Shown in pieces: positions 33,001 to 56,782 of a DNA stretch of 64,000 nt. This DNA comes from Podarcis bocagei (Eukaryota), in NCBI GenBank assembly GCA_964188305.1, contig OZ076900.1; one strand, written 5' to 3'. A program made the translations under genes and the position numbers. The notes under the pieces are model-generated. The model was not told the origin of the DNA and ran no database searches. It saw nothing but the letters and a program-made list of their open reading frames with translations. Every line of letters starts with the position of its first letter. The first letter of the stretch is position 1.

Positions 33001-35335
33001 AGAGAGAGACCAATACCAGAGTTCAGTCATTGCAGGCCAGCTGGGAGAATCTCCTTGTCTGTGGATGGTGCTGTTTTGGCCAAGTAAGGATTGGTACCTG
33101 GGAACATGGGTTTGCTATTAGGGAAGGCGTGGGGGGTATTTTGGCCTTCCAGATGTTGCTGAACTCTACAACTCCCATCAGCCCAAGCAAGCATGGCCAG
33201 TGGACAAGGAAGATAGGAGTTGTTCAGCAGCAATGGCAGGGCCCAGTGTTCCCCACCTCTAGAGTATTGTTGTTGTTGTTAGTTGAATTAATATACCGCC
33301 CCATACCCAGGGTCTCAGGGCAGTTCACAGAGTAAAATCAAGATATAAAACCACAAAATACGTGGAGGACACCCTGTCATTCTACAATGTAACTTGGGTG
33401 ACTTGCACTGAGCAATAAAATGACATACCATCATTTGTTGATCAGAGAGCAGATAGGAATCAGTCTCATAAAAGTTAAATAGCTCCACCATTGCCTCTTA
33501 AAACAAATAAACACAAAGGAAACCAGTGAGGCAGATTTGCACAGTGACATCTTCCTTAAAATAAACTCTGTCTTTATTATTTATTTATTTATTGAATATA
33601 TAGTATACAGTATATGAATATACAGTATACAGTATATGAATATACAGTATACAGTATATATATATATACAGTATACAGTATATATATATATATATATACA
33701 GTACCGCCTTATACCAGCAGGTCTCAGGGCATCTTCACAGAAAAAAATCAAAATATAAAAACACAAAATTCATAATCAAAATACAGTGGTACCTCTAGAT
33801 ACGAACGGGATCCGTTCTGGAGCTCTGTTCACATCTAGAGGTAAACGTAACTAGCGACGGCACGTCTGCACATGCACATGATGTCATTTTGAGTGTGCGC
33901 ATGCGCAAGCGGCGAAACCTGGAAGTAACGTGCTCTGTTACTTCCGGGTTGCTGAGGAGCACAGCTCGAATGCGCTCAACTCGAAGCATATTTAACCCAA
34001 GGTATGACTGTAAAAACAACAACCACCCAATAGCACCCCCCCAAAAAACCCCCACATTTTAAATGGGCCTAGGATGTCAATCAAATCAACCAAAAGGCCT
34101 GGTTAAAAAGGAATGTTTTTGCCTGGCGCCTAAAGGTGTATAATGAAAGCACCAGGCGAACTTCCCTGGGGAGAGCATTCCACAGACGGGGAGCCACTGC
34201 AGAGAAGGCCCCATTCTCGTGTTGCCACCCTCTGGACCTCTCAAAGAGGAGGCACATGAAGAACTGTAGATAGAACTGTAGATAGCTTGCATTTATATCT
34301 GTAGATAGCTTGCATTTATATCTAGGCAGCTTTGTTAAGTGGGCAGTGTGGAAAGCTGCCGTGGTTAGCAGAAAGGTGAGGTGAGGTGAGATTTCATACT
34401 TGGGGAAAAAACAAGAGAGCAAACCTTCCCTTCAACGCTAGGTGGCACCCAAGCTTTTTATTTTCTGGCAGTCTCAGGCGTTCCCTCCTCACCTTGCCCC
34501 TCAGCTTGGCGAATGAAAGAATCCCATCCCATCCCATGAAGGGGATGTGGCTGCTCACAGAGGCATGAAACATCCTGTGATAATCACAGCAAAGCAAAGG
34601 AGCATGCGAAGCATGTGTTTTAGCACTGTGCGGAGGTCCTTCCCTAAACGGAGTTGCACAATTAACCCGTTTGAATGCACATGATGCTCTGCTAACCCCA
34701 CTAGCCACACCCCCAGCGTACGTCTAAAGTACTAGGATGCCACTTTAAAGAGCAATGGCTTTCCCCAAAGAACTGTGGGAACTGTAGTTCACCAAGGGAG
34801 TAGAGGTTTGCTGGGAGACCCTGTTTCCCCTCACAGGGCTGCAATTTGCAGAGTGCCCTGAGATTGACTGATAAAACACATGGGGATGTGTAGGTCTGGG
34901 AGTGGGGGGGAAGCACCCTTAACAAACTACAGCTCCCAGAATTCTAATCATAGCGCTTATCTGCTTAATTACGAATTTGGTTTGGCATTTTCCCTCCCCA
35001 ACCCCTTTCCAAATCATGTAGCTCTTTAACTCCTTGCAAATTCTAAGCCTTGATTTCTGACATGGTGCCACTCTGCTGTATCTGTTTCTTTCCCTTCCTG
35101 GTCCATGTTGACAACAATAACAACTTAAGCTGAATTTCTCTCTCTTTCTTCCCAACCCCTGCCCTCCTTCTCCCCCCCCTTTCTTTTTTTACAGCCTAAC
35201 CCCCTGGAGCTGCCGATGCTGTTGTCCTACAAACCGCGGGGGAACAGCTACACCTCTGAAGGAAAGCCAGGGAGCTCCGTGACTAATTTTGCAGAACGTT
35301 GCCATCTCAGGATACTTCAGATGCAAAGATTTTAA
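198..35335 (+). CDS. ATP11C: ATP11C phospholipid flippase (P4-ATPase), 3' half of a multi-exon gene; the 5' part lies upstream of the window
   Basis: 14 AG/GT-bounded exons splice in one continuous frame. They carry P-type/P4 motifs ([64 protein letters not shown]) and the ATP11C-specific tails [17 protein letters not shown] and [10 protein letters not shown]. Confidence 0.96.
1089..1162 (+). CDS. ATP11C: ATP11C exon ([24 protein letters not shown])
   Basis: aaaag|G...G|gtgagt; N-domain F-D-x-x-RRRMSV motif. Confidence 0.93.
1275..2000 (-). mobile_element. L1-clade LINE 3' fragment
   Basis: ORF2 C-terminal peptides (HMWWSC..V..YW, PEAFL.GI, YATTAA...APKW...EW) with frameshifts. Confidence 0.8.
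2110..2213 (+). CDS. ATP11C: ATP11C exon ([17 protein letters not shown]...HVERNAM)
   Basis: ttctag|...|gtaaga; KGADS motif. Confidence 0.95.
2937..3188. mobile_element. Tc1/mariner (Tigger-like) MITE
   Basis: TA|CAGTGGTACCTC...GAGGTATGACTG|TA. Confidence 0.85.
3785..3966 (+). CDS. ATP11C: ATP11C exon ([12 protein letters not shown]...[10 protein letters not shown])
   Basis: ttttag|...|gtaagt. Confidence 0.95.
5139..5393 (+). CDS. ATP11C: ATP11C exon ([26 protein letters not shown]...PPNAKR)
   Basis: ccgtag|...|gtaagt; overlaps ORF 5173..5397. Confidence 0.95.
6716..6890 (+). CDS. ATP11C: ATP11C exon ([14 protein letters not shown]...[11 protein letters not shown])
   Basis: ttttag|...|gtgtgt. 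Confidence 0.95.
7720..7822 (+). CDS. ATP11C: ATP11C exon ([34 protein letters not shown])
   Basis: atttag|...|gtgagg; GDGAND hinge motif. Confidence 0.96.
8031..8176 (+). CDS. ATP11C: ATP11C exon ([16 protein letters not shown]...VQYFFYK)
   Basis: ttccag|...|gtaatg. Confidence 0.96.
9393..9452 (+). CDS. ATP11C: ATP11C exon ([20 protein letters not shown])
   Basis: ttttag|...|gtaggt; 60 nt. Confidence 0.95.
10940..11067 (+). CDS. ATP11C: ATP11C exon ([30 protein letters not shown]...PKLY)
   Basis: tttaag|...|gtaagt. Confidence 0.95.
13045..13500 (+). mobile_element. L2-type 3' tail with a nested, partial Tigger-like MITE (~13190-13416)
   Basis: ccctgtggaacaccctccc...ttttagaagacatctgaa tail (also at ~6940-7140 and ~27900-28120), interrupted by a MITE ending GAGGTACCACTG|TA. 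Confidence 0.7.
14031..14095. repeat. (TTA)n microsatellite
   Basis: Direct reading. Confidence 0.95.
14690..14825 (+). CDS. ATP11C: ATP11C exon ([16 protein letters not shown]...IENNGK)
   Basis: tggcag|...|gtaaga. Confidence 0.94.
14996..15050. repeat. (TTTC)n microsatellite
   Basis: Direct reading. Confidence 0.95.
15608..15862 (+). mobile_element. tRNA-derived SINE (Squam3-like)
   Basis: tggtgtagtggttaagagc head, CTT tail; a close copy lies at 62572-62815. Confidence 0.8.
16976..17041 (+). CDS. ATP11C: ATP11C exon ([22 protein letters not shown])
   Basis: tttcag|...|gttagt. Confidence 0.94.
17259..17362 (+). CDS. ATP11C: ATP11C exon ([35 protein letters not shown])
   Basis: ctccag|...|gtaagc. 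Confidence 0.95.
18241..18380 (+). mobile_element. tRNA-head/CR1-tail SINE (Squam2-like)
   Basis: gatagctcagctggtagagc A-box head followed by a ggttggactagatg...ccttccaactct tail. Confidence 0.65.
18420..18868. mobile_element. Tc2/mariner-type MITE
   Basis: TA|CCGTATTTTTC...GAGAAATATGG|TA; a related right end lies at ~56000-56137. Confidence 0.7.
19355..19612. mobile_element. Tigger-like MITE
   Basis: CAGTGGTACCTC TIRs with TA flanks; same family as 56477-56698 and 58543-58784. Confidence 0.85.
19773..19926 (+). CDS. ATP11C: ATP11C last constitutive exon ([12 protein letters not shown]...KSMKRKRHQ), ends in phase 0
   Basis: ggccag|...CAG|gtaagg. Confidence 0.94.
22178..22406. mobile_element. 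Tigger-like MITE (older)
   Basis: TA|CAGTCATATCTTGG...CCAAGGTACGACTG. Confidence 0.65.
23059..23439. mobile_element. hAT-type MITE
   Basis: TAGGGATG...CATCCCTA TIRs; 8-bp TSD ACCCCAAC/AGCCCAAC (7/8 match). Confidence 0.75.
25907..25990 (+). CDS. ATP11C: ATP11C alternative C-terminal exon [27 protein letters not shown]
   Basis: Long pyrimidine tract + cag, phase 0; resembles a remembered vertebrate ATP11C alternative tail; probable donor 5 nt after the stop (AAG|gtgatc, 25996). Confidence 0.75.
   Translation, partial: VTRRLPSSGTSTIFVLSQTSSNHSFSE
29662..29763 (+). CDS. ATP11C: ATP11C-a type C-terminal exon [33 protein letters not shown]
   Basis: tttgcag| phase 0; SVRPLL di-leucine motif; donor CAG|gtatcc 3 nt after the stop. 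Confidence 0.92.
   Translation, partial: KRGRPRIAASSVPTRPSVRPLLLRTFSDESNVL
31251..31600 (+). mobile_element. Sauria SINE (Squam1/POMSINE-like), near full length
   Basis: gcgggtggcactgtgggttaaacc head, gtgcaagtagataaataggtacc core, (ACCTTT) tail; flanked by an 80-bp direct repeat. Confidence 0.9.
32298..32361. repeat. (GTTT)n/(GCTT)n microsatellite
   Basis: Direct reading. Confidence 0.9.
33784..34010. mobile_element. Tigger-like MITE nested in a minus-strand L2 tail (~33700-34260)
   Basis: TA|CAGTGGTACCTC...AAGGTATGACTG|TA; flanks translate as [14 protein letters not shown] (L2 ORF2 end). Confidence 0.8.
35195..35335 (+). CDS. ATP11C: ATP11C-b type terminal exon, coding part [20 protein letters not shown]...MQRF*
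   Basis: Strong pyrimidine tract + acag|, phase 0; LLSY motif. Confidence 0.9.
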   Translation, partial: PNPLELPMLLSYKPRGNSYTSEGKPGSSVTNFAERCHLRILQMQRF

Positions 35336-38300
35336 CCCCAGCACACAGTTCTAAACGGACAGCACTCTCGGAGTCAAAAATGAACGCTTGGAAGCAAATC
35401 AGGCCCACCAGAAAAAGAAAAAGAAGAAAAATACAAATGGTTCTATATTTTGGTTAGGCTTTTTTTGCTTTCTTTTTTTTAAGAGGACCTTTGGTTTGCA
35501 TTGTGATTTTTTTTTTAGAAAAAAAAATCAACATAAACGGGGGTGCCATCCTTTTCATCTGTTCCTCCCCCTTCCTAATGCAAGTTTTGAGAAAGCAACC
35601 CGGCTGTTTTGATGACAAGAATTGTGTGAGCTTTTTGCCCACTGCAATGGATGATCTGTCCTCTGTTCAGCCATCTTCACCCTTGTCCAAGGAAGAGGAA
35701 GGGCTGTGCATGGCTCTCCCAACCAAAGATATAGAACAAGTGGTATGTTACAGTTCCCCCAAAATAGCACTAGGAATTTTTGGTAGGTAACCATTCTGTT
35801 GCTAAGCCATAAACGATGTTTGTTGGTGGAATCTTAATTTCCCCCATTGCCACCCCAGTTCCTCTAATGAGAAAGTTGTGCCATACCCTTTTAAAGGGAC
35901 AATGTGGACATTTAGAGAAAACACACACACCCCATTTTTTTTCTCCCATCCAATCCGACCCATCAGGAACACCTGAAAAACAAAACAAGTGAAGCACCCA
36001 TTCTCCCAGACATCTACATCCATCTCAAAACCTGAGGTTAATTCCCACCTTTTTGAAATGTGTCCTTTGTCCAGGCTCTCTCTTCTCCCACCAAACAGGT
36101 ATCTCACAGCCAAAGTGAACATGCACCTATTCCCCCCACCCACCCAAACTCTAGATTGATGTCCTTTGGCTGTGTGAAAATGTGGGACCTGCGTTTTCTG
36201 ACCTGCTTTGACTTCTGCTGTGATGGGCTTGCGCACCTGCCTTTTGGATGGAGGTTGCCACATTGCCTAGAATGTATGACTTCTTCACAAGCTCAAGTCA
36301 GTGTCCCGAGCACCGTCGAAGGATGCAAGCCATGGGTTCTTTGCTGTGCTAACCTTGTCCTCCTCTTCCATATTCTGTTGAGCGGGTGGCAGGTCCAACC
36401 CATGGGACATCAGCCCTCCCTCCCTCTTTTTTTGAAAGAGTGTGGGATGCAGAACCTAAAACAGCCTGTACTGTTATCCCTTCTGTTCTGTGAAGGGAGG
36501 CAGGAGACGCATCACCTTCAATCTCCTCCAAAGTGTGGCACATCTTAATGGCCAATTCCAACAATAGGTTTCAAAGACGTCCCCTGCAGAATCCTTTCAA
36601 TGTGGGCACCTGGCGCTATTTTGCATGTGCAACGCCAAGCATGCCTTTAGCTGCACGTGTCTAGTGGGTGCATGCGTTTGCCGCCATGTAGTGTCTGATG
36701 TGGCTCGTTTGGGCACATGCAGTGGACACAGAGCACCACGGGTTCCCCCCCCCCCCCCGCCCTCTCCTTTACCGTGAGTGTTGCACACAACTTCAGCACT
36801 TCCTGCAACGGTAGAAGAGGCCCTGTAGAAAACTGGTTTGGAATTTACGATTCAAGTTAAAAGAGTGTAAGCTTCGGTTCACACATTGCTTCTATGCAAG
36901 GCAAAGGATATTCACCAGCAGCAAGCAATTCCACAACAGTAGGGCATATGTATGGGCCAGTTAAAACGTTTTTGTAGCAGATCTGAGCCTGTGATGATGT
37001 GGCATGTGGCGACTGGGGCTGCTCCTAAAACTCCCCAGCATTTAATCGAGGTTCAGTCTTCCTTTGCTCATTCTTTCCCCATTGCCACCTCTTTTTTAAA
37101 AAAACGGGGCCAGTAAATCAGAACTTCTCACTTCCGCTGTGCCTACAAAGGACATATTGGAGAATTGCTAGATGTTACTGGGGAGGCTGGCAATGACCCA
37201 CATCTCTCGGGAAAGAAACCAGTGGTGTGGCTCTTGCCACTCTTGGAATAACGGTTCTTAATTTGACCCATGTCTCACCTGCAGTGCCCAGATAGGTCCC
37301 AAAGGTATCTTGAACGGTGGCCTGAGTGCCAAACCATTTGGGAGGGATGTTTATATGCATATTTCAATCAGTGCTTTTGTGACTTCTCCAGTGCTAGTGC
37401 TGAAATGTTCAGCTCTAATGTTCTCTGTATCAGGGAAGGAGAACCTTGAAGCCCCCCAGATGTTATTGGACCAAAGCTGCCATCAGCCCCAGCCCACATG
37501 ACTAGTGATAAAGGATTATGGGAGTTGTGGTCCACAACACCTGGGGGGTGGCAGGCTCCCTACAGGCAGCCTTTTGCCTAGTGGTTGTGATGAGGATTCA
37601 CTCTGCACCTCCCATTTATTTTAGTTCGAGGAGTGTGGTGGTTTTATTGTGGTTTTGTTGTTGGGGTTTTTTGTTGTTTTTTTTTGAGGGGGGGATGCTT
37701 TTTATTCAAAGTGAGTCAGGAGAAGCCTCAAGCTTATCACCCTTCCAACCACCCTCCCTACCCCCAAGTAACATTAATTTGGTAAGTTTACCAAAGTACG
37801 GTTTCTGCATTTTGTTGCTTTCGAAAATACCAAGCCGCCTCAGAGACAGTTTCATTTCAGCCCAGTCCACCCGAAAGTAACGTGAACCTAGCAGTTCATT
37901 GAGATTTATGCAAAGCCTTGGAGGAAGAAAAGAGGAAAGATGGCTTCTTTGAAATCCCATTTGTAAAATGATGGGTTTGGTCTGGCCTTCAACACAGAAA
38001 AGATGGGGGTGGGTGCTTAAAAAATGGACTTTAGATAGGAGATGGGGGATCTCCCAATTGAATCCCCATCCATTGTGTCCTCCAGTGGGATGGTGGTCAG
38101 ACTTGCTTCACATGGAAAACTGGATTTTAGAGAGAAATGGCCTAAACAGCTCCCTGATGTGCTCCTTTTCATGGGAAACTCATTCTAACATGGTATAGTT
38201 CTGCTGCAGTTTTCCCAGGTGATCTGCTCTCTGCATAGACCGGGCCTTAATCAATACTAACCTTCTCTGCACTTCATTCTGTATTTTCCAGCAACTAAGT

Positions 38301-41223: not shown

Positions 41224-43334
41224 TTTGGTAAAATGAACACCACCACCCCAAATCCAATTTGGTAGAGGAGCAGCTATGTATATCGCTTCAATAGATTGAA
41301 AGCTTCTTCAGGAAACAGGATCAAAATTCCATCCCTCCTCCATTTGAATAAGAACAAAAAATGATAATAACTTTCTCTAAAAAGAATGAGGGCAGTGTCT
41401 GCCTGTCAAATTTCCGAACCTCTAATGTAAAAAAAGAAGCAGCAGCATAATTATACAGCCCACGCAGGACATAAGTGCCTTTCCCCCACAAACTTTTTTG
41501 ATGTGAAATGACAGCTTACATAGAACTTGGAACAAAGCTGCTATATACAGTTAACATTCCACCACACTCAACATGCGCATACCTAATTGAAAAGCAGAGC
41601 AGTGATTCATCTGGCTGTTCTACTTCCTTCTATCACTAAACATGCATAGGACTGCACTGTTAAAAGCAGGGATGGTTGGTACTTAAAAAAAACCCAACAA
41701 TAATATTTGTTGGGAATTTTAAATACATTATCCTTCATTATTTTTGTATGCTGCTAAACATGGTTCTAAGGTTACGGAGTGGCAATGTGAAAGTGCTTTG
41801 TTTTTTTTAAAGAAGGAGAAGTGTGTTTTAGGGCATTCTTTCTCTCTTTCGTTGGACTGACACAAGGAACGTCCAGTATGCGATGAACAGATGGTGCTCA
41901 CTGCCATAAGCTGTCTTCCCTTTACTGGCAGGAGTTCTGGACTTCTATAACAGCTGAGAGTGCCAGGCAGAAATCCTGCAGGTGAATCTCCCTACAGTGC
42001 TGAACTGAAGTTATTTGCTTGCAGATAATGTTAAAAGTGGAAGGAGGACCAGAGCTCAGTGGTTAGAGCACATCCTTTTGGATGCAAGGAGCTCAATCCA
42101 GGTTAGACTTTGGGGAAAGGCTGCAACTCAGTGGCAGAGCACCCTCTTTGCATCCAGAAAGGCACCAAGGTTCAACCCTTGGCATCTCCAGGTAGGTCTG
42201 GGACAGTCACCCTGCCTGGAACCCTCGAGAGCCTCTGATAGTCATAGACAGTTCTGAGCAGATGCAGATTTAGGGTAGCGCAACTGGTTCGGTCTTACTG
42301 GGTGCGAAGCCTCGAGGATGCTGCATATATGATGTACATAGAAAGAGATTATTAAAAAAAACTTTATTCGCATTAGCCAATGGACATAGCAACAGTAAAA
42401 CATTACAGTATATGCAGAAAATGAAATTTGATATAAAAGCACAATTTAAAGTTCTGAATATGATGTACATAAAGTGGAAGGCAAGAAGTGGAGGTAGCTG
42501 AATTTTGGCAGCCCACAGGGCGCTGCTGACTCCAAGGTCCACCACTGTACTGAGCTAGATTGTCCCATGATCTGGCTCTGCATAAGGCAGCTTCTTAGAT
42601 TACTTAAATATTTCCCCTTTTCAGCATTGTGAAGACTAGAGTCTAAAATTATCATTTAAGGGGTGCGTGCTGGTGCATCACAGGTTCGGTTTCCTGGATC
42701 TCCAGGTAGGGCTGACCTAGGTGAGCCAGAGATCTGACATAGCCTAAAGCAGCTTTTAACCCCCTCCCCAGCCTGAAACTCTTGAGACACACAATCCTGT
42801 TAGTACAGACAGTCCTGAGCTAAGTGGACAAAGTATCTACCTAAGAAGTGCACCTTGCGTTTCTAGAGGCGCTTTGAGAGCTGGCACAAGGGGTGCCAAT
42901 TTGAATAAAATGGGGGTGGCAGCAGGTAAGCCCCGTCCCACATAATCACATGACACAGTACACACACAATTTGAATGGTAATGCCCATCAACTGGGGGGG
43001 GGGCTGCCCCCCTCATATTTTATTGGGAGGGGAGATCTCTTGTTGGTCTGTAGGAGTTGGCTTCTATGGCAAGGTGGCTCTGATGCACGGTTAGCCCCTT
43101 ACAGTAAAGGAAAAGCCATACACTCACAGCGCTATGCAACTCTCCGCTGCATAAGAGCCAAATCAGCCTGGAGACGTCTTGCAGGCCTCCCCTGAAGATC
43201 CAAGCACGTCCTCTCCCCAACACCAACCTGTCCCCAAGCCTGATGTAAAGAGGGGTTCTCAGGCATGTGTCTTCAGCATTATACATGAACAGGAACAGCG
43301 TTCCGGTTTAAAGCCAGTGGCGGTGCAGTGCCTA

Positions 43335-43515
43335 TGGCTGTGTCTCACATACAGGTGAAAGTGCAAAAGTTCATCAAGAAGTTTCAGGTCAATATCTTCA
43401 GGGTAGATATTCCATCAACAGTTCTAAACCTTGCTGAATTTCTTGCTTTGATACTTTCAGGATAGCAAGAATGGAAAACAATTCTGCAACACAGTACCTC
43501 TTTTTAAATTGGCTT
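43335..43515 (-). mobile_element. Degenerate hAT transposase fragment
   Basis: VAELFSILAILKVSKQEIQQGLELLME/IYPEDIDLKLLDELLHFHLYVR (one frameshift); resembles ZMYM1-like hAT transposases. Confidence 0.55.
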
Positions 43516-43628
43516 TTCTTCTATCGGTTGGACCTGAGTCAGGTTTTATATAAAAAGAAACACACAATAAGTAAGTTCTGCTTTCTTACTCAGTTTTATG
43601 AAGGGTTTACCTAAAACCTCCACGCATT

Positions 43629-43972
43629 CAGGGACGCGGACTTATAAAAAATATTGGGGGGGGGGGCCGGGACAGCTCATGAATAATAAATAAGCTCATG
43701 AATATGCAAATAAAGTGGCGCCGCCTCCTCGTGAGCGAATAGGGGAGAGCGTGCTGCACCTATTAATCAGCTCCGAAGGAAATTGGGTGGAGCTTTTGCT
43801 CGGGAGGGAGGGCAGGAGGCATGCAGCCCGACCCTGTGCATTTTGGGCTGGGGGAGGGGCGGCGATGGCGCTCTGCTGGAGGGGCGTCGGAGATTATTGG
43901 GGGGCGGAGCCCCCCAAACAAATTTTTGAGGGGGCTCGGGCCCCCTCAAGCCCCATGGAGTCGGCGCCTATG
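43629..43972. mobile_element. Young CpG-rich hAT MITE
   Basis: Perfect 8-bp TSD CACGCATT (43621-43628 and 43973-43980); imperfect TIRs CAGGGACGCGGACT / AGTCGGCGCCTATG. Confidence 0.8.
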
Positions 43973-44779
43973 CACGCATTGGAAGGTCCTTTTCTGCAGT
44001 GACACCCTTCTAGTCATTCCCAAGCTTCCCTCGCCCCATTTGATTACTTAATAACAGCTGATACAAGAAATGTGGAAGAGCCACCAGTTTTCCATCAAAG
44101 GTCCCACAACACTTCAATTTTTAAATATTACCTTGAACTCTTGCGCTGATGCAAGAGAAGCTGACGTCACCAGCATCTCAGTGAGATTCTTTATTTTCTC
44201 CTGCAGCTCATTTTGAAGAGCATACTTCTCCAACAATCTCTGCCAGCTGGGATTGTGATGAGATCTACCAAGGGAAAGCATCAATACCAAACGTCGAAAG
44301 GCACAAAATGTTGTTCATAGTAAGGTGTACATGATTTCCCAAGCAAGGAAAATCCATTATGAGGGGGGATTTTGTACACGACCTGCTGAAAACTTACACA
44401 CACTTTTGGGAATACTTTACTACCCAAAGCCAAATTTTCAATCTATTTTGGGGTAGTAAAATCCCTTAAAACAAATCCATGTGTGTGGTGCCTGGAGAAG
44501 GTATTGAAGTTTACATTACAGAAAAAATTACCCTGACATGTTACATTGGCTAGGATACCCATGTGCTTTTGTGTAGACCCCTCCATGCTTGTGAGGATTA
44601 TGGCTGTTAATCTGTATATTACTGTGATGATAATAATGTACTGTAAGTACTAACGGCTGTGAAGGTTAAACATCAGCAAGAAACAATGAAAGCATTTAAG
44701 TTTCTCAGTCATTTCTGTGAAATTGAGTCTGCACCCCCCAGTGTGGAAAGGGTTGCATACAAGCAATGACCAATACTTT

Positions 44780-46590
44780 GTATTCTTTGGTGATCACTCG
44801 AAGCCAAGTAAGATTGTCTTCCATAAAGACGGTTTTAACAACGAGTCCGTAAGTGACTGTGGAGGCCAATTCTGGATCCACACATCCTTCCACAGTGCGG
44901 ACATTGGTTTCCGGGTGGGAGTTGATCACGGTGTGGATTTGCCAAGCATGCCTTCCTCTTAGCACTTTTCTCCCTTGAGTCCTGAGTTTGAGTGTCTTCA
45001 AAGCCCATGACACCTTTAGTAAAGGCTGTTCTCCAACTGGAGGGATCGCAGGCCAGCGTTTCCCAGTTGTCAGTGTCTATACTACATTTTTTTTTAGATT
45101 TGCCTTGAGACAGTCTTTAAACCTCTTTTGTTGACCACCAGCATTACGCTATTTTTAAGTTTGGAATAGAGTAGTTGCTATGGAAGACGATGATCAGGCA
45201 ACCGCACAACATGACCAGTCCAACGAAGTTGATGTTGAAGAATCATTGCTTCAGCACTGGTGATCTTTGCTTCTTCCAGTAAACTGATATTCGTTTGCCT
45301 GTCTTCCCAAGTGATGTGTAAAATTTTTCGGAGACACCATTGATTGAATCTTTTGAGGAGTTGGAGATGGCGTTTATTAGTGGTCCATGTTTCACAAGCA
45401 TACAGTAAGGTTGGTAGTACAATAGCTTTGTAAACAAGCATTTTGGTTTCCCTGCGAATGTCCCGGTCCTCAAACACTCTGCACTTCAATCGGGAGAAAG
45501 CTGCACTTGCAGAGCTCAGGTGATGCTAGATTTCAGCATCAATGTTGGCCCTTGTGGAAAGATAACTGCCCAGGTAGGAGAAGTGATTGACATTTTCCAA
45601 CGTTACACCATTGAGTTGGATTTGTGGCGCTGCAGAGGGGTGATTTTGTACTTGTTGGTGTAGCACTTTGGTTTTTTGGATGCTGAGTGATAGGCCAAGC
45701 TTTTCGTAATCTTCTGCAAAGATATTTAGGATGGTTTGGAGGTCATCCTCTGAGTGTGCTGGATCTCTTGAGCTTATTTTAATAAACCAGTGTTTTTTAG
45801 TTCTCTGGTTCTTCTTTGAACCTCAGCCTTAGCACTGGCACAGGTTTTTTTCTTAGTGGCACAGTTTCTATCTCTTTGCCAGATCTGAAAGGCCTTCCTT
45901 TTCTTGTCAAATATGTGTTCAATCTCACTGTCATTCTCATCAAACCAGTTTCTGGTGTTTCTTGGTTTGCTGTCCAATAGTTTGTTCACAGGCTGAAATA
46001 ATGCATGTTTTTAGCTTGGTCCAGTGTTCCTTGATGTTATCAGGGAATTCTGAAAGCAGATGGTCCTTAATGGGATCTTGAAGGGCTTGAGTGTTCATTT
46101 TGTGCCTTGGTTTCCTTTCTTGAATCCTGCGTCAAGGTATAATCTTGATAGCCATCGTGGAGCGTATTAGTTGGTGATCTGTCCAGCAGTCGTCGGCGCT
46201 CGTCATAGCTCTGGTAAAGAGCACATCACAGCAATCTTTAGCACGGATAATAACATAGTCTAAGAGGTGCCAGTGGTTTGACTGAGGATGCCTCCATGAA
46301 GTTTCAAATTTATTTTTCTGCTGAAAGAGTGTGTTGGCAATAACAAGGTTGTGCGCTACACATATTGTCAAAAGTAAGATTCCGTTCTGGTTGCTGTTAC
46401 CAATTCCTTTTTTCCCAATAATCCCAGGCCACAGATCAAAATCTCACCCAACTCTTGCATTAAAATCACCCAGGAGGATAATTTTATCTTCCTTAGGTGT
46501 CTCTGATAGGACGGTATCCAGCTGAGAGTAAAATCTTTAATGTCTTCATCGGCATCCAGTGTTGGTGCATAAGCGCTTATACTAGTAGCA
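44780..46590 (-). mobile_element. RTE-clade LINE, 5'-truncated and internally deleted, inside an intron of the CENPE-like copy
   Basis: APE endonuclease motifs (ISAYAPTL, GDFNARVG, WHLLDYVII), RT tail (VYKAIVLPTLLYACETW, LRWTGHVVRL) and a C-terminal C2H2 (CPHCGRMCGSRIGLHSHLRT). Confidence 0.88.
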
Positions 46591-49018
46591 TCCAAAAAAC
46601 ATGCGATTGCATATGGCGATGAACCTGGAAGTGACCTAAAAACATTGCTCAGCATGTCACGAAAAGAGTGTAACAGGGCTGGGATACACTTATACATGCT
46701 ACTCCAGTGTATGTGGGAGCCGGGAATGGAACCCCCGCATGAAATGGTTGTCAACTTTATTAAGAGTTGCCATTAAAATTAGGCCAGACTCTTAAAATGG
46801 AGACTGCGTCTAAACAGAGATTATGGCCCCCTCACTTGGAATAGGCAGTTGTCTTATAATCCAAGTCACCAACTAAAAGAATGCTATTGCCACCAGCATT
46901 CGAGATTACCACGGATATTTGAACTTCTAAAAGATAAATGTGTTGTGCTTTTAAGGTATAATTGCTGGCAAAATAGAGCATGAATCCTATTTCAAAACAA
47001 AACAAAATATAGATGCAATTTGACCTGTTCCAGCCTAGAACAATCAGATTTCCAAGAAGACAACTTACATCTTCAATTTGTTGTTTCAAGCTGTCAATCT
47101 CTAAACGATACCTCTTTAGAAGGACATCCTCATCTGTAACGTAATTTATTATAGGGCGGTTTTTCATTTTTTTGGCTGTATTCGCAAACTAGGAGAGATA
47201 GGCACATGGAGTCAGAACCGCTCTTTGAAGGAGTCAGAAAAAATGACATTTGTGTAAAATCTCTTCGAAAATTACAGAAGTATGGATCATAAAAATCAAC
47301 ATTTGCTATTACAGTAAATACAAATGGTACCCATTAAACGAAATGTTGCAGCGTACCTTCACCTCCCCACAGAAGGGATAAGCCTAGGTTACCAACCCGG
47401 TGTCTTCCAGATGTTGTTGAACTACAACTTTCATCATCTGACCATGTTGACCATGGCTGATGGGAGCTGGAGTCCTCCAACATCTGGAGGGCAACAGAGA
47501 AGCTGTCAGGAGCTCAAGTAGGCCTTTCCCCCCACCCTTCCTTTCCCACCTGATATTCAAGACTCCATGACTACCATGTCTTCACAAGCTCTCTTTTTAA
47601 GAGTTTGAGGGTTTGCCGTCAGTATCCAACCCACTTATTGGAGGAAGTGCTACACTACTTCCCTTCGAAGTGGAAGTCTGATTTCTGATAGTTCTATAAC
47701 TGCAGATACATATACCAGAACAAAGCATGCCAGTTTAAAGAGAGGGAGAAAATACCTTCTTGCCTACTTGTTACTTGGGGCAAAACTTTTGGGGGAAGGA
47801 AACGGACCTGTATAGTTTTACCTGGAGAGTTTGAAGCGTTTCTTCGAACGATCTCAGAATGACCGTGAAGATGATAACAGTCTTAGAATTGTCACCAAGT
47901 GATTTGTGCAGAAGCCATGTTAACGTACTGTCTCTGTAGTTGACGTAGGCTCTGGTGAAGGAGGATGATCAAAAAGGAGTAGGAAAGTTTTTAATATTAA
48001 GTAGAGGAAAAACTGGCCCAAGAGCCAATCTTTTACATCTAGGACAGAGACAGCCAATGTGGTGCCTTCCGAAGGTTGTTGGATGACAACTCCCATCAGG
48101 CCCAGACAGATGACCAATGGCCTGGCAGTGGAGGGAGTTGTAGCCAAACAACCTAGGAATGGCACTACCTTGGCTGCCTGGCCTAAGATCAAGTGAGAAC
48201 ACTTTTCAATACAGCACAAACTAAAGAACTGTTAAGCTTAACTGAATTGTCCTTACCCACTCTGCTCTTCACAAAGGTTCTTGATAACTTGGCCCAAGAT
48301 GGAGAGGCTCTGGTTTACACTGCGGCCTTCTTGGAGATGGATTCCTAGGCATTAAACATCAGTTTTTTTATTTTCAGACAGTTCCTTCTACAAAAGTTCT
48401 TTTGCTACCATATTGGGAGTTAACATAGTCAAGAGTTCCTGAATTTGGTTGATTTCTTCTTCATTCTCCATTATCCCCCCGCCTTCTGTATTGTTTTTAC
48501 CTGCCCTTTAGGCACTTTATACGTGTGAAATAACAATACTGGTCATTATCCTGACAGAAGGCAATATCAGCAGAATGGGGGAGGCAATTTTAAGCGATTC
48601 CCATTCTGTCCTTAAATCTGCTCTGGGTGATTCCCCAACCCTCTGCAGCAGATCAAAGAGAGGCACAGGGTCCTGCGTAGGGTGAATGACCCGAAAAATA
48701 TTATCTCCCCTGTTCTGCCAACAGATTCCTTCTGTCAGTGAAATGACAGCATTGGAGACACCCAATAAGACTTCAGCATTTTTAGTGGTATGATGAATTA
48801 TGCCATTTAACTCAGAAACATTGAATAACTTCAGCCAAAAGGAGGACGATAACGCTAGAAGGCCTATAACCAAATATTATATTCATTAAATGTATATACT
48901 GTTGGAAAAATGCCCTGGGGGTGCCAGCAAGCCCCCAAAACTCTGAGTGTCCTCCGGTACACACAGCTCTGGGAAAGGCATCTCCCTTCTCTTACAGTGC
49001 GCTTCTAGCAACATATAC

Positions 49019-49295
49019 TAGCTGGTATATGCACATTAATCTTCCGGCATAACACAACAAGAGTGAGTGAGTCATCATAGAGCTAAGCTACTATTTATTT
49101 ACACACTATGTACAGACAAAAGCATAATGGCGTCCCTTCTCTCCAGCTCCAAGAGAACAAACAAAGAAATAAAAGCAAAAGTACAGTGTAATAGTACCTG
49201 CAGCAGAAGAGGTAAGACTGTCTTCCTTCGTCCCAGACAGGCATGTGATTTACAACAATCTCATCTGCAGCGTTGGAGGAGTGAAGTTGCTAACA
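49019..49295 (-). mobile_element. Probable solo LTR
   Basis: 5-bp direct flanks TATAC; TA(for TG)...CA ends; AATAAA on the minus strand. Confidence 0.5.
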
Positions 49296-50864
49296 TATAC
49301 CACCCTTCATTCAAGGATCATGGGGCGGTTTTACAATGGTCTCTGCAGAAGCAGAGATGAGGAATTTGAGGCCCTCCATGTGTTGTTGGAAGACAACTTC
49401 CAGCATTGCTGACCACTGGTCATACTGGCTAGGATTGCTAGGAGTTCATATGCAACTTATACAGCACTACAGGTCCCTCATCCTTGCTGTAGAGAAGTTA
49501 GATTTTTGTGCAAGAATCTACCAGTTGGGAATGTAACATCTGCATCAGTCTTGTGTTCCAAATGTGATGAATTTTACTGTTAAGCTGTAAATGGCTTACA
49601 TAAATAAGAGCAAGCATGCCCAAGAACCCTGGAGGTGGGAATTACTTGTGGGTTGTTGTTTTTTTACATGTTTTACAAGTTAGGATTTAGCAGATTACCA
49701 GAAAAGCTTGATCATCATCAGCTACATACCTTCAGCACCTGTTTGGGTAGCTCTTTCACTTCCTGCCAAATCTACCAAATTCTGAAAATTCAAGTAAGAC
49801 TGTGTTAGACACCATTCTCACACAAGATCTATTCAAATCATCTATTGATTGAACAACAATTCCAAACAGTGGCAGATGAAAGCCTGAGAAAAATAAGTTC
49901 CTGAGACTGTACATGAGCAGAAAAAGGTCTTTGGCCAGGAGTTTAAATCAAAGGAACAACAATAATTTTGTGCAGCACTGGTCACTACATCTGGGAGGAA
50001 ATACATTCAAATGAACAACATTTAGCATTTCATGAAAGCGAAAAAACAGAGGAAATGTGTGTTAAAGAGAGCCAGTCATTTGTAGATTGCATCTCAGATC
50101 CAGGATGGTCTACAACAGAAGAAAAAGGTAGAAGGATGTGCATACTGTGTGATTTGATGTTTTGACCACTGAATTTCTACTATAGTCCAAGGACCCAATG
50201 TGGCATAGTGGTGAGTGTGTGGCTAGGACCTAGGAGGCCAGGGTTCAAATCACCACACAGCCACAAAGCTCCCTGGGTCACCTTGGTCTCTCAACCTAAC
50301 CTACTTTGTAAGGTTGATGTAAGCATAAAATGAAGGGGGACAAAATCAAGCAGGCCACCTTAGCTTCTTGGAGGAAAGGTGGGATATAAATGCAATAACA
50401 ATATGGATGTTGTTTAGTCTGCACCTCTTCAGTATGTTCCAGCAATGTCAATGGAACTTGATTTGAATAAGCATTAGGAATGCTGTGCCAAACAGACTTG
50501 AAACCCAGAGCAAATGAATTTCTGCTGCTGCTATTTCCCAGGCAGAAACAGCCCTATTAAACACTTCAGAAGTTAATTAGCCTTCCACAATCCCAATATA
50601 TATTTGACTCTGCCAGCCAGATCTCAAACAGAAAGCACACAAGGCTAGCCCAATATATTTTGCTGCCTGAGCCAAAGCAGAAGATGGCACTCCTCCCCTC
50701 CCCACCTCTTTCTGTATAGCAAAGTCAACCAGATTGGTGGCAAAATAATATCTTCTACTTCATCTCAGGGCAGCAGCCTAGCTTAGGGGGAAGAGTGGGT
50801 CATATGGTACACAAACCTCTTTCCTCCAAATGTCAAAGCATTTGGGGCTTTCAGAGGAAAGGCA

Positions 50865-51305
50865 AGCTTAAGGAGGGACCCGACAGAGGTGTATAAGATT
50901 ATGCATGGTAACGAGAAGGCAGATAGGGCTAAGTTTCTCTCAATTTCTCTCTCTCTCATGTAATACTAGAACTCAGGGCCATCCAACAAAGCTAAGATTC
51001 AGGACAAAAGAGAAAGAACTTCTTCACACAGCACATAGTTAAACTATGGAGTTCACTCACCCAGTACATAGTAATGGCCACCAACTTGGAAGCCTTTAAA
51101 AGAGGATCAGACAAATCTATGGAGTACAAGTGTATCAAGGACTACTAGCTAAGATGGCTAAGTTCCACCTTCACTACCAGCTGCTGTGAATCACAAGTAG
51201 AGAAACTGCTTGGGTCTCAGGCACCTGGTTCACCACTGTGAGAACAGGATGCTAGAATAAACAGGCCATTGGTCTGATCCAGCAGGGCTCCTCTCATGTT
51301 CCTAT
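50865..51305 (+). mobile_element. CR1 LINE 3' fragment
   Basis: gaggtgtataagattatgcatgg...actagaactcagggccatcc...aggatgctag...ggtctgatccagcagggctc; a similar CR1 tail lies at ~54630-54915. Confidence 0.8.
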
Positions 51306-51599
51306 AACACACACAAGCTGCATCATCCTTCAATAGTAGTTTTTTCTACCAACCCCCATTTACGAACCTCAGTTCTCTATTTCAGTGTTTCCCAACCTTT
51401 TTTGGGCAAAGGCACACTTGTTTGATGAAAAAAATCTCGAGGCACACCACCATTACAGCCCCGTGACGTCAGCGCGCAGCCTCACGCCGGGAGGGACGCA
51501 CGAAAGTGTAAGTTTCAATTTTTTCCCCTCCCCCTTGCCGGGGAACCTCCAAGCTTTAGGGGTGGGGGGGAGGAGGCAGCAAAGCGAGGCAGGAAGGAG

Positions 51600-52640
51600 A
51601 GCGCGGCTTGGCTGGGTGAGCTTTGGCAGGGGCAGGGAATGAGAGCCGCGAGGCGGGCGCTGCGGACGGAGGAGAGTGGATATGCAGGGCTGGAAAGATT
51701 TTCATGATTACATCAAATCTATTAAGCCGCCCTTCACCATCAAGCCAGGCTTACAGAAATTTAAAAGCCCAGATCCCCCCCCCCTTTTAACCCACGCGCA
51801 TATAAAACAGCTGCAGTCGAGGCGGGGAGGCGAGGAGGGGGAGTGAAGCAGTTAAAAGCAAATAGAAATAGAGTCGCAGGAAAAAGGTGTGCGCCCCGAT
51901 CCCGAGTCAGGCTTCCTTCTCGGGGCTTCGCGCGCAGGTCTGGCCAGCCTGTTAAGGTCCAGCGCTTACATCGGAGTAGACGACTTAGAAACCGCGGAGC
52001 AACATGCGGGGGGCTTCGCCTGCGCCTCTGGAGAACGACTCCCCTTTCCCAGCCCCAGCAGCTCACCTGGCGGGGAGCGGGCGCCCCCGAACGCAGTGAC
52101 AGCACCTTCCTCGCACATCTCGCCGAAGCACAAAAGACGCCGCTGCTGCCCCCGCCCCCCGGGCCTTTTTCTATTGGTCCGCGGGTGACGTAGGCGCGCA
52201 GTCCCCGCCCACAAGTTGGACCGTAGTAATGCGTAAGGGAGTGGGGGGGCGGGCGAATCGATCTCATGCGCCTGGTCGGGGGGAGGCGATGAGACAAAGA
52301 GCGCCCGATCCTGCATAAAGAGGGAGGGAGTTTCCAGAGGGAGTTTCGGGGGAATCGAGCCTCCTTCTTATCTCTCGGGAAATGCGTGAAAAGGAAGGGG
52401 GAGTATTCCCCTGGCTTCCCCCCTCGCCTTGTTTCCCAAGGACCGTGGTGGTGTTAGGGTTAAAAAGGTCCCTTCGTTCTTTCCCCCCCTCCCCTCCGTC
52501 GTCTCTCTTCGGTGGTGTCAGGCCAGGAGGGAAGCCGCTTGCTGATTGGCTGGATCGGATTCTCAGCCTTCCGAGCGCGTTGATTAAATGCGTGCCCTTT
52601 AAAGCGCTGGTGTTCTTCGCGGAAGAAGCTGAGAAGCCTC
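51600..52640. promoter_or_regulatory. CpG island / promoter of the CENPE-like copy
   Basis: CpG-dense; CCAAT (attgg) at ~52173 and ~52545, a CRE-like TGACGT at ~52186 and GC boxes just upstream of the minus-strand ATG at 52118. Confidence 0.7.
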
Positions 52641-52805
52641 CGTCCTTTGCCCCTTTTTGATTGAGAGAAGGGCCGGATTTACGTATAAGCCAGACAAGGT
52701 ATAGCTCAAGGCCCCACTCTCTTGGGGCCCCAAAAAAAATTAAAGGAAAAAACACCTGGATGTACATTTCCAAAATATAAGATAAAAAATAAAAAATTAA
52801 AACCC

Positions 52806-53850
52806 AGCCCATCTAATCTTTGTATTCTCTGTATTCTTCACAAGCACAACCAAACTTTTGTGTTTGATCCCTGTTTGTGTAAATATTCATTTAAACATTC
52901 CCATTGTTTCTGTACCATAGTTTTAATTTTATGCCTTATTATATCCGTCAATTTTGCAAATTCCAGATACTCACATAGTTTAACCATTCCCTTTTTGTTG
53001 GGATGTTATTTCCTTTCCAGTAACTGGCCACCAAAGTTCTCACTGCTGTTGTTGTGCATAGGAATATGTTAATTTTATCTTTGGGGATATCCTTACTCAA
53101 AATTCCTAATAATTATGCTTCTGCCCTTTTGTTATATGAAACCTTTATTAATTTTTTAAATTTCTTCATGGATCATTTCCCAGGATTTTTTTATCTCTGA
53201 ACATTTCCACCACATATGGTATAGAGTGCCCTTCATCTTACTGCATCTCCAACATTTATTACTAATCAATCTATTCATTTTTGCTAGTCTGTCTGGTGCA
53301 TCATCTGTGGTGCATCTTCATATAATTCTCTCTTATTGAATTGCAGGCCATAAAATTTATGTTTCCCCCAAAAAACTTTTCCAGTCTTCCATATCAATTG
53401 TATATCCTAGATCACATTTCCACTTTAGCATATTCTCTCCTTTTACTTCTTGGTCTATTAAACTATACAGTTTCAAAAGTGTTTTTTGATTATTTTGTAA
53501 TACCTCTCTTTCTAATTTTGATGTTTTATCCCCAAATCCCCTAATTTTTATATCTTTCTCATATGTAGCCTTAAGTTGGAAATATTCTAGCCAATTTTAA
53601 TTCTCATTCTTGATCTTATTTCTTCCTTTTCTTTATCTTCTTCTTCTTCTTTTCTTTTATATTTTACCTTTCATTTCTTTTCTTTATTGTGAACATTGTT
53701 TTGTAGAGGTGCAAATAATTGTAAATATCAGAAGAGGTAAAATGTTTTCTAATTTTCTATTGGTTACATGTATTTTCCTTTTTTTGTATATTTGTATTTT
53801 TTTCTAATTTGTACTCAATAAAATTAACAATAAATAAATAAATAAATAAA
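52806..53850. mobile_element. L1-clade LINE fragment: ORF2 end on the minus strand abutting a plus-strand 3'UTR/(TAAA)n tail
   Basis: Minus strand KCWRC...GTLYHMWWKCS..., LCEYLEFAKLT; plus strand T-rich UTR with AATAAA and (TAAA)n to 53850. Confidence 0.65.
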
Positions 53851-53855
53851 GCTCA

Positions 53856-54125
53856 TCACGTGTCCATCTCCTCGTCCCACTTGGCGGCGTCAGGCAACTT
53901 CATGTTTTGTCACATGAAATCAAGGAACATGGAGGCCTGCAGTAACCGGCCCAGCCTCTGGAAGTGCCGTGTATGGTAGGAGAGACTCCACAGCTGCTTT
54001 GATCCCTTCGTATTGCAAGAGGCTCTCTGGCGTCTCATGCTTGAGGAGGGTTTCCACCACTGCCTGAGCCTCGAGGTAGTTCCGCGAGTTTGTGTTCCAC
54101 ATGATGGAAAACTTCAACACAGCCT
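53856..54125 (-). pseudogene. TBL3: TBL3 (UTP13) C-terminal fragment, disabled
   Basis: Reads AVLKFSIMWNTNSRNYLEAQAVVETLLKHETPESLLQYEGIKAAVESLLPY, then after a frameshift RHFQRLGRLLQASMFLDFM*QNMKLPDAAKWDEEMDT*. WNTNSR and LLPYT-RHFQRL are Utp13-domain signatures. Intact acceptor (cttcttccag) upstream. Confidence 0.85.
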
Positions 54126-55008
54126 CTGGAAGAAGCGGTTTGGGGAAGACACGTCAGGAAGGAGTGCAAGTTGCAGGCAGCGTGGCCACCTTGAACCAAC
54201 ACACCTCTCTTGCGAAGCGTGGCCAGGTCTGGGCACACATCTGACCTGCGCCTTTCTTCAAGGCAGGGAAGCAGATCCAACACCCCTCCCCCCCAGTAGA
54301 AACAATTAATGATGCGAGGGGTGACTGAGTTTATTCCAGACTACATGGCTTGCAGGAATGGGTTTTATAATATTTATAAAAGTACAACAACAACAACAAT
54401 ATGCATTATAATCTCTGCTCTAGTATTACAGAGCTGGTGGAGCTAATCTGAGGCTGTATACACACCATACATTAAAAGCATTATCACTTCTCCCCTGTAA
54501 GAATCCTGGGAACTGTAGATTACCCTTCTACCGCATAGCTACAATTTGTAGCACCCTTTACAAACTGCAATTCCCAGGATTCTTTGGGAGAAATGTGCTT
54601 TTAATGCCTGTTTTTCCTGCAACAGGCATGCTCAGCTACCCCTCTGGAAGCTCAATCCCACAGAAAGCTGTGACGGCCACCAACTTGGATGGTTTTATGC
54701 AGGAAATGCTATCAATGGCCACTAGGCACGATGGCTATGCTCTACCTCCACAGTCAGCGGCAGTAATGTTTGTGAACAGTAGTTGCTGGAAGATGCAGGA
54801 AGGGAATACAGAATGCTCTTGTTTCCACAGGCCTCTGGTTGGCCACTGTGAGAACAGGATGCTGGACTAGACAGGCCAATGTGGCCTCATCCAGCAGGCA
54901 CTTCTTATGTCCTTACGTGGTTCAAGGGTAGAGATTGTGAGAAGGCATCTTCCAAAGCAATCCCACCCTGCAAATAGCTTTGGAGCCTTCTTGCCTCTAG
55001 CCTAGCCC

Positions 55009-55332
55009 TCACCCCTTTTCCTGTTCCCGCTGGAGTCTTCTTTTGCTTGCCATGCTGCGGGCTCTCTTCCGGCCAACGCTGCCAATGACAGATCTTAAAA
55101 ACTTGGGGTCGGTGAGATTCGGCAATCGCAGCACCTTGCGTCTGCTGGACCTCCTGAGCAGAGCGGGTTGTGTCTTGCTCCTCGTGAAGTAGGGTGAAAT
55201 GTGAGGAGTGTTGCAAGCCGGTGCAGAGGCAGAAGGTCTGGCCGAGATGGTAGAGCACGGCTTCTCTGACAGGGGCTTCTTCCTAACCCAGTGGAACACC
55301 AGTATCATATGCCTCTTAGATGGGTTGGACAT
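55009..55332 (-). CDS. Hypothetical 107-aa basic protein (unrecognised)
   Basis: ATG with A at -3; 26 K/R versus 4 D/E; CpG-rich relative to flanks; no recognisable repeat. Confidence 0.3.
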   Translation of the reverse strand: MSNPSKRHMILVFHWVRKKPLSEKPCSTISARPSASAPACNTPHISPYFTRSKTQPALLRRSSRRKVLRLPNLTDPKFLRSVIGSVGRKRARSMASKRRLQREQEKG

Positions 55333-56139
55333 GCTGAAGAAGGTGCTGGAGGCCCAAAGACCAGGGTGACTTCAAAGCGGAGGATGCAGCAGGCAGTTCC
55401 CTATCAATGGTGCCAAATCCAAGCAAATGTTAGCTCCAGTACTGTTAAATCGATCCAGCAATTATGAACGTTAAAGAAGGGATTAATTCCTCAGGCAGTA
55501 GGAAAAGACTTTCTGTGGCTTTTTAATAGATGGGAGCCCCCAACTACTGCCACTGTTGACAGCCTGTTGCCCCTTCACTCTGCTTGAATGGGTTATGTCA
55601 TAATGGTTCCTTCATCAGGTGTTTGTGAGCATGAAAATGCTGTTGGGAGTTTCAGCAATGAAGGCTCAGGCATAACATAGTTTGAAAGTCTGAACATTTC
55701 CTTTTTTTATTTAACAAAATGTATATACCACTTTTATCATTTATATACAAATTATTAGAAGAGTAAGTTAAAAATATACTGTAGTTTATTCACTTATAGG
55801 CTAGTTTCCATACTTTATTCCTTCTTATACTTCTATCCCACCTTTCCTCCACAGAGCATACACACTTCAGCCTCCACCTTCTCCATTTTATCCTGACAGC
55901 AATATTGTGAACTAGGGCCATAGCTCAGTGGTAGAACAACTGCTTAGCATGCAGAAGGCATCAGGTTCAGTCCCCAGCATCTCCTGGTGGGACTGGGAGC
56001 GCTCCCTCTGCGCTTCGGAGGCTTCGCGTTGCTATCGCTGAAGCCAAGGAGCCTGCATTTGCTCCATAGGACGCACACACATTTCCCCTTAATTTTGGAG
56101 GGGGAAAAGTGTGTCTTATAGAGCGAAAAATATGGTATA

Positions 56140-56782
56140 TCCAAAACCCATGTAAGGGTGAGAAAAACATAAATTTTACAGCGTGTGACCTATTAAGGGA
56201 GAACTACAGAAAAATTCATCATAGATGGTACTTAACTCCTGACAGATTGTCAAAAATGAATAAAATGAACAACAATAAATGCTGGAAATGTAATAGGACA
56301 AAAGGCACATTATACCACATGTGGTGGACTTGCTCAAAGATTAAAACCTTTTGGGACATGATCCACGACGGGATAAAAAAATTTATAAGGGCATCACACA
56401 ATAAAAAGGCAGAGGCATATCTACTAGGAATTCTTGATAAAGATATCCCAAAGGATAAAACTAACATATTCTTATACAGTGGTACCTCAGGTACTTAATT
56501 CGTTCCGGAGGTCTGTACTTAACCTGAAACTGTTCTTAACCTGAAGCACAACTTTAGCTAAAAGGGGCCTCCTGCTGCTCCCGCTCCGCCAGAGCACGAT
56601 TTCTGTTCTCATCCTGAAGCAAGGTTCTTAACCTGAAACACTATTTCTGGGTTAGCGGAGTCTGTAACCTGAAGCGTATGTAACCTGAGGTACCACTGTA
56701 CGTGACAACAGCGGCAAGAGTTTTGATTGCTAGCTATTGGAAAAAGGATAGCATTCCAACAAAAAGAGAATGGCTGCGAAAA
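56140..56782 (+). mobile_element. L1 ORF2 C-terminal fragment interrupted by a Tigger-like MITE (56477-56698)
   Basis: HRWYLTP...KCWKC...YHMWWTC...IFLY[MITE]VTTAARVLIASYWK...EWLRK. Confidence 0.85.

Follow-up and report, generated by a model that had tools for sequence, protein, structure and literature searches.

A 64,000-nt stretch of Podarcis bocagei DNA (hereafter the window, whose numbering is used unless another locus is named) carries pieces resembling CENPE, a kinesin gene, and TBL3 on its minus strand at approximately 43.5–56 kb. The closest described counterpart is the orthologous locus of P. lilfordi on OX395140.1 (L001), where a protein of 484 aa annotated as 'centromere-associated protein E' (CAI5793438.1, P0001) is encoded head-to-head with an MCF2-type gene. 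Like the window, this locus lies beside MCF2 and holds the same exons (83–100% amino acid identity in the shared exons), the TBL3 piece and a long interspersed nuclear element (LINE) in intron 12. Unlike the window, it has 16 exons in frame and is devoid of approximately 1 kb (54968–55971) that contains most of an 'orphan' open reading frame (ORF). With vertebrate CENPE (P. raffonei P0191, Pogona P0041), the copy shares the intron positions of motor and neck, and its promoter and introns can be aligned to those of the lacertid gene. However, it is located on another chromosome, lacks the stalk, the kinetochore-binding region and the tail, differs by 86 copy-specific replacements in 478 columns, including switch I, vs. 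8 on the parental stem, and is a pseudogene in the window. Finally, non-processed transcribed pseudogenes resemble this case in their copied introns and promoter, intact parent, deletions and frameshifts, and spliced RNA, which is seen here in relatives. The case departs from them in that the frame of one species stayed open unusually long and in that the exons diverged more than the introns.

The locus is best seen as a product of duplication and decay of the ordinary kind rather than as a novel chimeric gene. We are fairly confident that its CENPE part represents the remains of a segmental duplicate of the whole gene, situated between ATP11C and MCF2, and that the part with TBL3 and the orphan ORF is a separate and younger insertion. 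An earlier note on this DNA had proposed a lineage-specific mosaic of DNA-level duplications. The DNA-level copying of CENPE and a lineage specificity at the level of the family were borne out, but the event was neither recent nor species-specific, and it involved a whole gene and not 'pieces' of one.

The CENPE-derived DNA extends from 52657 to 43514 on the minus strand and is interrupted by a LINE-like insertion and other repeats. Searching the window with P0001 and squamate CENPE (tblastn) located six CENPE-like exons between 52118 and 44132, all on the minus strand and all with canonical splice sites. The intron-bearing exons reported previously were thereby recovered, together with exon 1, its promoter CpG island and two further motor exons, which had been overlooked. 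Exon 1 (52066–52118) starts with MCEEGAVTA and ends at the donor GTGAGC, exon 9 (49729–49781) encodes the switch II motif DLAGSE, and exon 10 (48257–48343) is 83% identical to P0001. Exon 11 (47831–47951; NYRDS to GDNSKT) has the acceptor CAG and the donor GTAAAA, exon 12 (47069–47188) covers the end of the motor and the neck, and the coiled coil starts in exon 13 (44132–44264). When exon 12 was compared with 1.84 billion representative proteins, P0001 was among the first matches, at 95% identity. It was accompanied by full-length proteins named CENPE from snake, Pogona, gecko and turtles, the best squamate and turtle matches being 62–65% identical; squamate CENPE gave the best full-length matches to this exon. 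Exact-sequence look-ups of P0003, P0004, P0051 and the TBL3 ORF of the window returned no match.

The similarity to CENPE extends well beyond the exons. In their intron positions, the 16 exons of P0001 agree with exons 1–15 of Pogona CENPE. The alignment of L001 to the true CENPE locus of P. raffonei (L003) includes promoter and introns; it covers −555 to 25663, then 33149–35959 and 46883–47330, the last being past the gene end. The copy differs from its parent at p 0.095 over 12,258 aligned intron positions and at p 0.13 over 516 upstream ones. Since introns and promoter align with the parent to beyond its 3' end, it can be concluded that the whole gene was copied at the DNA level and that the internal deletions followed later. 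A processed retrocopy does not fit, as the introns are present. Intact parents exist elsewhere in the lineage, with full-length CENPE found in P. raffonei, P. muralis, P. lilfordi (on another chromosome), Lacerta agilis and Zootoca. In P. raffonei, the true gene is found on a different chromosome, with a radial-spoke gene on one side and an adh_short gene on the other, as in Pogona, and the same radial-spoke gene is found upstream of CENPE in Lacerta agilis. TBL3 is not the neighbor in these loci, which agrees with the previously suggested two separate donors. A single donor, with the TBL3 3' end beside the CENPE promoter at the parent locus, was rejected because the radial-spoke gene occupies the upstream position in all three species.

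The age of the duplication was estimated from 4302 gap-free, mostly intronic columns with the Kimura two-parameter (K2P) distance. The copy is 0.122–0.126 away from the Podarcis parent and 0.114–0.121 from the Lacerta parent, while the two parents are separated by 0.066 and the copies of the two species by 0.036. Being equidistant from both parents at about twice the distance between them, the copy must predate the split of Podarcis and Lacerta. At the same time, it carries lacertid-specific residues and an indel absent from Pogona CENPE, which places its origin within the lacertid line, lineage-specific at roughly the family level; its introns are approximately 88–90% alike to those of lacertid CENPE.

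In P. bocagei, the CENPE copy is a pseudogene, disabled by two multi-exon deletions and two frameshifts. The segments absent from the window correspond to L001 10475–15773 (5.3 kb; exons 2–8, with P-loop and switch I) and L001 23216–30635 (exons 14–16), whereas the frameshifts result from a 4-bp deletion in exon 1 (GTCT absent relative to P. lilfordi) and a 2-bp deletion in exon 13. What is left of the gene is exon 1 and exons 9–13, not a complete kinesin domain in one open frame, and of the catalytic motifs (P-loop GQTxxGKT, switch I SSRSH, switch II DLAGSE) only switch II is kept. A repeat of very high copy number (51385–51669, beginning CAGTGTTTCCCAACC on the plus strand) fills the first deletion junction; it has no match in the P. 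lilfordi locus and reaches a DNA contig depth of at least 1e5. The second junction (43514–43972, minus strand) coincides with a segment that occurs as a direct repeat in L001 and consists of a 343-bp unmatched insert and a 99-bp remnant of a distal CENPE intron (parent L003 35808–35906); nothing else of the copy is kept beyond exon 13. The exon 1 region was confirmed by a contig of 794 nt that stems from a different study's run, and a same-species DNA contig was identical to the window over 51946–52731 except for a 2-nt insertion in a G run. The stalk with the kinetochore-binding and tail domains is missing already from the P. lilfordi copy, which lacks L003 25663–33149 and 35959–46883.

Upstream of exon 1, the copy retains the CENPE promoter (52119–52657, minus strand), with two CCAAT boxes and a GC box, aligning with P. 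raffonei CENPE from −556 before the ATG. It coincides with a CpG island (51900–52700; GC 0.605, CpG observed/expected 0.87). Transcription was assessed by comparing four sequencing runs over 48230–54200, with probable RNA runs from related species (organisms F and G). In run X15, from the close relative organism F, a contig of 767 nt and depth 31 connects exon 10 with exon 9 (48343 to 49729) and exon 9 with position 52093 within exon 1 (49781 to 52093), and the joint between exons 10 and 9 is also present in run X17 (organism G). The stretches skipped in these contigs end in CT..AC, equivalent to GT..AG on the minus strand. The RNA-type contig of organism F covers 52093–52132 in the exon 1 region. 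On exon 10, the X15 contig differs from the window at 5 of 87 nt (approximately 94% identity), while the parental exon reaches only about 80%, so that the RNA derives from the copy. Moreover, this contig leaves at most approximately 457 nt for the 666 nt of the missing exons 2–8, and organism F is therefore probably without those exons as well. Spliced RNA from the locus was thus observed in the relatives F and G. The earlier suggestion was that a CpG island at 57 kb could allow a chimeric transcript; the CENPE duplicate, however, has its own copied island as promoter, at 52.1–52.7 kb, and does not use this MCF2 island.

The TBL3 piece has a different history. It covers 53857–54127 on the minus strand, from the end of the Utp13 domain (Pfam Utp13, E = 6.5e-12) to the stop codon, and matches residues 712–765 of human TBL3 in PDB 7mq8 (E = 1.5e-15), in line with the C-terminal fragment first noticed there. 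Two lesions, a loss of 5 nt at 53968 and a change of TGG to TGA, are also carried by the P. lilfordi locus. The 5 nt are present in the RNA contig of organism F and in 14 of its 16 raw reads; apart from them, there are 6 differences from the window in 260 nt (approximately 2.3%). These reads represent true TBL3 mRNA mapping across and are nearly identical to the piece, which must therefore be young. The DNA contig depth at 53.0–54.2 kb is 7–20 times the single-copy level, with several variant contigs, and Podarcis annotations contain other short TBL3 fragments. Other copies of the TBL3 3' end are the P. lilfordi 'beta 3' protein (P0286, 123 aa, Utp13; OX395137.1) and the short P. muralis models named 'transducin beta-like protein 3'.

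At the second P. lilfordi copy on OX395137.1 (L005), the TBL3 exon sequence of the window (54127–53848) is matched at 94.7%, and a block matching window 56005–55012 sits collinearly about 0.5–0.9 kb upstream of it. This 1-kb block (55012–56005, minus strand; 92.6% identical to L005 8538–9546) contains most of the orphan ORF and the head of a tRNA-type short interspersed nuclear element (SINE). As both parts occur collinearly in L005, the orphan ORF and the TBL3 piece form one multi-copy unit, and window 56005–53848 would be a much younger insertion of this unit, comprising the last coding part of TBL3 and the 1-kb block upstream. The L005 copy is intronless further upstream, keeps its frame and has approximately 100 nt of 3' untranslated region and an A run. 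The window copy, in contrast, shows an intron-like acceptor, the 5-nt loss and the TGA, and its likeness to L005 stops 9 nt past the stop codon. A-rich sequence follows downstream of the window piece; a target-site duplication was looked for and none was found. Just upstream of the intronless TBL3 3' part, L005 (9632–9829 and 10001–10372) also contains an ORF, and an AT-rich insert at this site has the 15-bp direct repeat GGACCTGCTATTCTT on its two sides. The ORF may resemble the N-terminus of GFER/ALR (motif CRTCTDF); it had no match in PDB, Pfam or the Atlas.

The orphan ORF itself comprises two overlapping open frames of 117 and 107 aa (54905–55332, minus strand). It gave no Pfam match and hit only unnamed clusters in the Atlas, and its L005 counterpart shows a 1-bp indel and scattered replacements. 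With 63 stop-free stretches of at least 117 codons in the window, its length is no more than chance, and a transposable-element protein or a gene was rejected on account of these search results and the ordinary frame length. The orphan ORF of the earlier note does exist, but not as a third element of the mosaic, since it rides along with the TBL3 piece. With regard to the segment 54968–55971, which is absent from the orthologous P. lilfordi locus, a transposable-element insertion specific to P. bocagei was rejected. In P. lilfordi, the junction interrupts a SINE motif of which the window has the full length, and the block is also found at the second P. lilfordi locus. A deletion in P. lilfordi is more likely.

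Several observations weigh against a duplicate that simply decayed, and they have to be considered together with the alternatives they favor. The CENPE-like locus may be, or may recently have been, a functional lacertid-specific truncated kinesin-7 with motor, neck and short tail under a copied promoter of cell-cycle type, which P. bocagei then lost; we consider this possible, yet on the unlikely side. In its favor stands the P. lilfordi gene, whose 484-aa frame is intact over 16 exons with canonical splice sites and encodes a complete kinesin domain (Pfam Kinesin, E = 7e-88) with the patterns of the P-loop (GxxxxGKT) and switch II (DLAGSE) kept. In simulations with 187 random substitutions, only about 0.15% of frames remained stop-free (P = 0.0015). 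As such a frame is improbable under pure drift, the copy was not always a pseudogene, and selection probably held its frame during some of its past. For copy vs. parent, omega is 0.46 (0.16 for parent vs. parent), and it is estimated at about 0.6, hence below 1, for the whole copy branch; the CpG island is kept, and relatives splice RNA from the copy. However, switch I is SNQSH in place of SSRSH, NYRDS is replaced by NCRDS and SYMEI by LYMEI, and numerous invariant motor residues are altered. Since the two species split, exons have been no better conserved than introns, and the exon differences are evenly distributed over the lineages (9:10), hitting conserved residues in both, so that the recent divergence looks neutral on either side. 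Other lacertid annotations hold no similar protein, and the joined contig of organism F has no room for all of exons 2–8. Furthermore, over the whole comparison of copy and parent, the exons diverged more than the introns (p 0.155 vs. 0.095), which neutral decay explains in part. Positive selection on the copy was not adopted, because synonymous sites of the parents likewise evolve about 1.8 times faster than parental introns. With regard to transcription, the case for P. bocagei draws on RNA of its relatives, X15 and X17 are RNA runs by our guess, and the raw RNA run X23 showed near-zero depth on the CENPE exons. A different objection is that the gaps at exons 2–8 and 14–16 could be assembly collapses at repeats, in which case the P. 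bocagei copy would be as complete as that of P. lilfordi. Both junctions indeed lie in or beside high-copy or direct repeats, and for that reason independent contigs bridge neither of the two window-specific deletions. We nevertheless regard a collapse as very unlikely, given that the window contains no N runs, that the 4-bp and 2-bp frameshifts fall in unique sequence, with the independent 794-nt contig backing the exon 1 region, and that the spliced contig of organism F is too short between exon 9 and the exon 1 region.

The TBL3 piece and the CENPE exons might, alternatively, belong to one chimeric transcription unit started upstream, e.g., from a divergent CpG island of MCF2, as the earlier note had envisaged. 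All parts are on the same strand, an X17 contig is identical to the TBL3 piece of the window, without the 5 nt, at a depth of 92, another one extends past 54200 towards MCF2, and short multi-exon 'TBL3' models of P. muralis splice into this exon at some copy. Judging from the X17 contig, organism G transcribes some copy of the unit; as the genome contains many of them, the depth may stem from other loci, and the RNA cannot be assigned to this one. In none of the four runs, compared over 48230–54200 and with RNA from relatives, was 53857–54127 joined to exon 1 or any other CENPE exon, and the RNA-type depth dropped to zero at 53630–53829 and near zero at 52230–52629. The 5 nt are present in most RNA reads on the piece, which hence come from the true TBL3 gene, and the CENPE copy has its own promoter, with exon 1 starting near 52132. 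A chimeric transcript is thus unsupported and, in our view, has hardly any probability. Also troublesome for a simple account of the younger insertion is the exon structure of the TBL3 piece. Upstream, it has an intron-like acceptor similar to an intron end in a contig of another species (P0288), but it is without an intron after LLPYT, where the P0288 contig has a donor and the window shows the 5-nt loss instead. This discrepancy weakens the candidate explanation that the last exon alone was copied as DNA. The reading as a decayed whole-gene duplicate of CENPE with a separate TBL3 insertion remains the one that we prefer.

The repeats surrounding these parts are in part of LINE type. The LINE-like insertion in intron 12 (44775–46587, minus strand) is flanked by parental positions L003 20330/20337; it is common to P. 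lilfordi and absent from the parent. Its translations read as endonuclease- and reverse transcriptase-like, with a weak match to Pfam RVT_1 (E = 0.024, under the cut-off). An L1-like ORF2 3' fragment (52841–53596, minus strand) lies between the TBL3 piece and the boundary of the CENPE copy and shows raised DNA depth and variant contigs (zf-RVT, E = 6.4e-4, under the cut-off). The transposable-element fragments noticed previously are present, although Pfam supports them weakly, with both matches under the cut-off. L1-like ORF2 3' ends at 56109–56700 (plus strand) and 52841–53596 (minus strand) bracket the unit of TBL3 and orphan ORF in opposite orientation, with approximately 75% DNA identity to each other. 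Besides the repeat at the first deletion junction, 50230–50430 and 52630–52830 are also very high-copy, and the DNA contig depth across the three repeats ranges from 1e4 to 3e5. The P. lilfordi annotation places a 116-aa gene without a Pfam family at L001 28533–29503, right after the CENPE-like gene; this segment lies in DNA derived from distal CENPE introns and is absent from the window.

The flanking genes are as previously named. An exon in the upstream flank matches human ATP11C (E = 1.3e-35), far better than other P4-ATPases, and on the other side, the orthologous P. lilfordi locus has a gene with CRAL_TRIO, spectrin, RhoGEF, PH and SH3 domains, which is the architecture of MCF2 (DBL). 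The pieces between the two are foreign to this interval, as had been claimed. An assembly misjoin is ruled out for the overall arrangement, as the window and the independently made P. lilfordi assembly run collinearly at 92–96% identity. On human Xq, ATP11C and MCF2 are placed between MBNL3 and GAB3. The chicken 4p orthologues of these two latter genes are candidate Z-linked genes tested in lacertids, whose Z chromosome corresponds to GGA4p+GGA17 and HSAX+HSA9 (PMC6534595). From these human and chicken gene positions, the ATP11C–MCF2 locus, and hence the CENPE copy, is probably Z-linked in lacertids.

The course of events may be sketched as follows. A CENPE duplicate would have landed between ATP11C and MCF2, head-to-head with the latter, in the ancestor of Podarcis and Lacerta, bringing along its own CpG-island promoter with CCAAT and GC boxes. 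Internal deletions would then have taken out stalk and tail and left a motor-plus-neck gene, which still appears as the 484-aa open frame of P. lilfordi. In P. bocagei, the copy is dead, with exons 2–8 and 14–16 deleted and frameshifts in exons 1 and 13. Here, the most fitting description is that of a duplicated pseudogene with transcription. Its promoter still looks active, and close relatives splice RNA from their copy.

The locus is an example of a common process, in which a gene is copied to a new chromosome, trimmed, and decays at unequal speed in sister species, with an unrelated fragment added later. For annotation, this means that the P. lilfordi entry 'centromere-associated protein E' (CAI5793438.1) is not the CENPE orthologue and that the short Podarcis entries named 'TBL3' and 'beta 3' are fragments. 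An unlikely but more far-reaching scenario is that lacertids gained a CENPE paralogue reduced to the motor, with a modified switch I and a probable location on the Z chromosome. Selection would have maintained its open frame over tens of millions of years, its CpG-island promoter would still be active and its RNA spliced, and lineage after lineage would now be losing it, with P. bocagei as a fresh loss and P. lilfordi as a retainer. If true, the locus would show the birth and death of a truncated mitotic kinesin as a natural series. A functional motor-only paralogue would be of modest evolutionary interest, and the probable Z location together with the CCAAT/GC-box promoter may be informative about gene traffic to sex chromosomes and about the tolerance of truncated kinesins.

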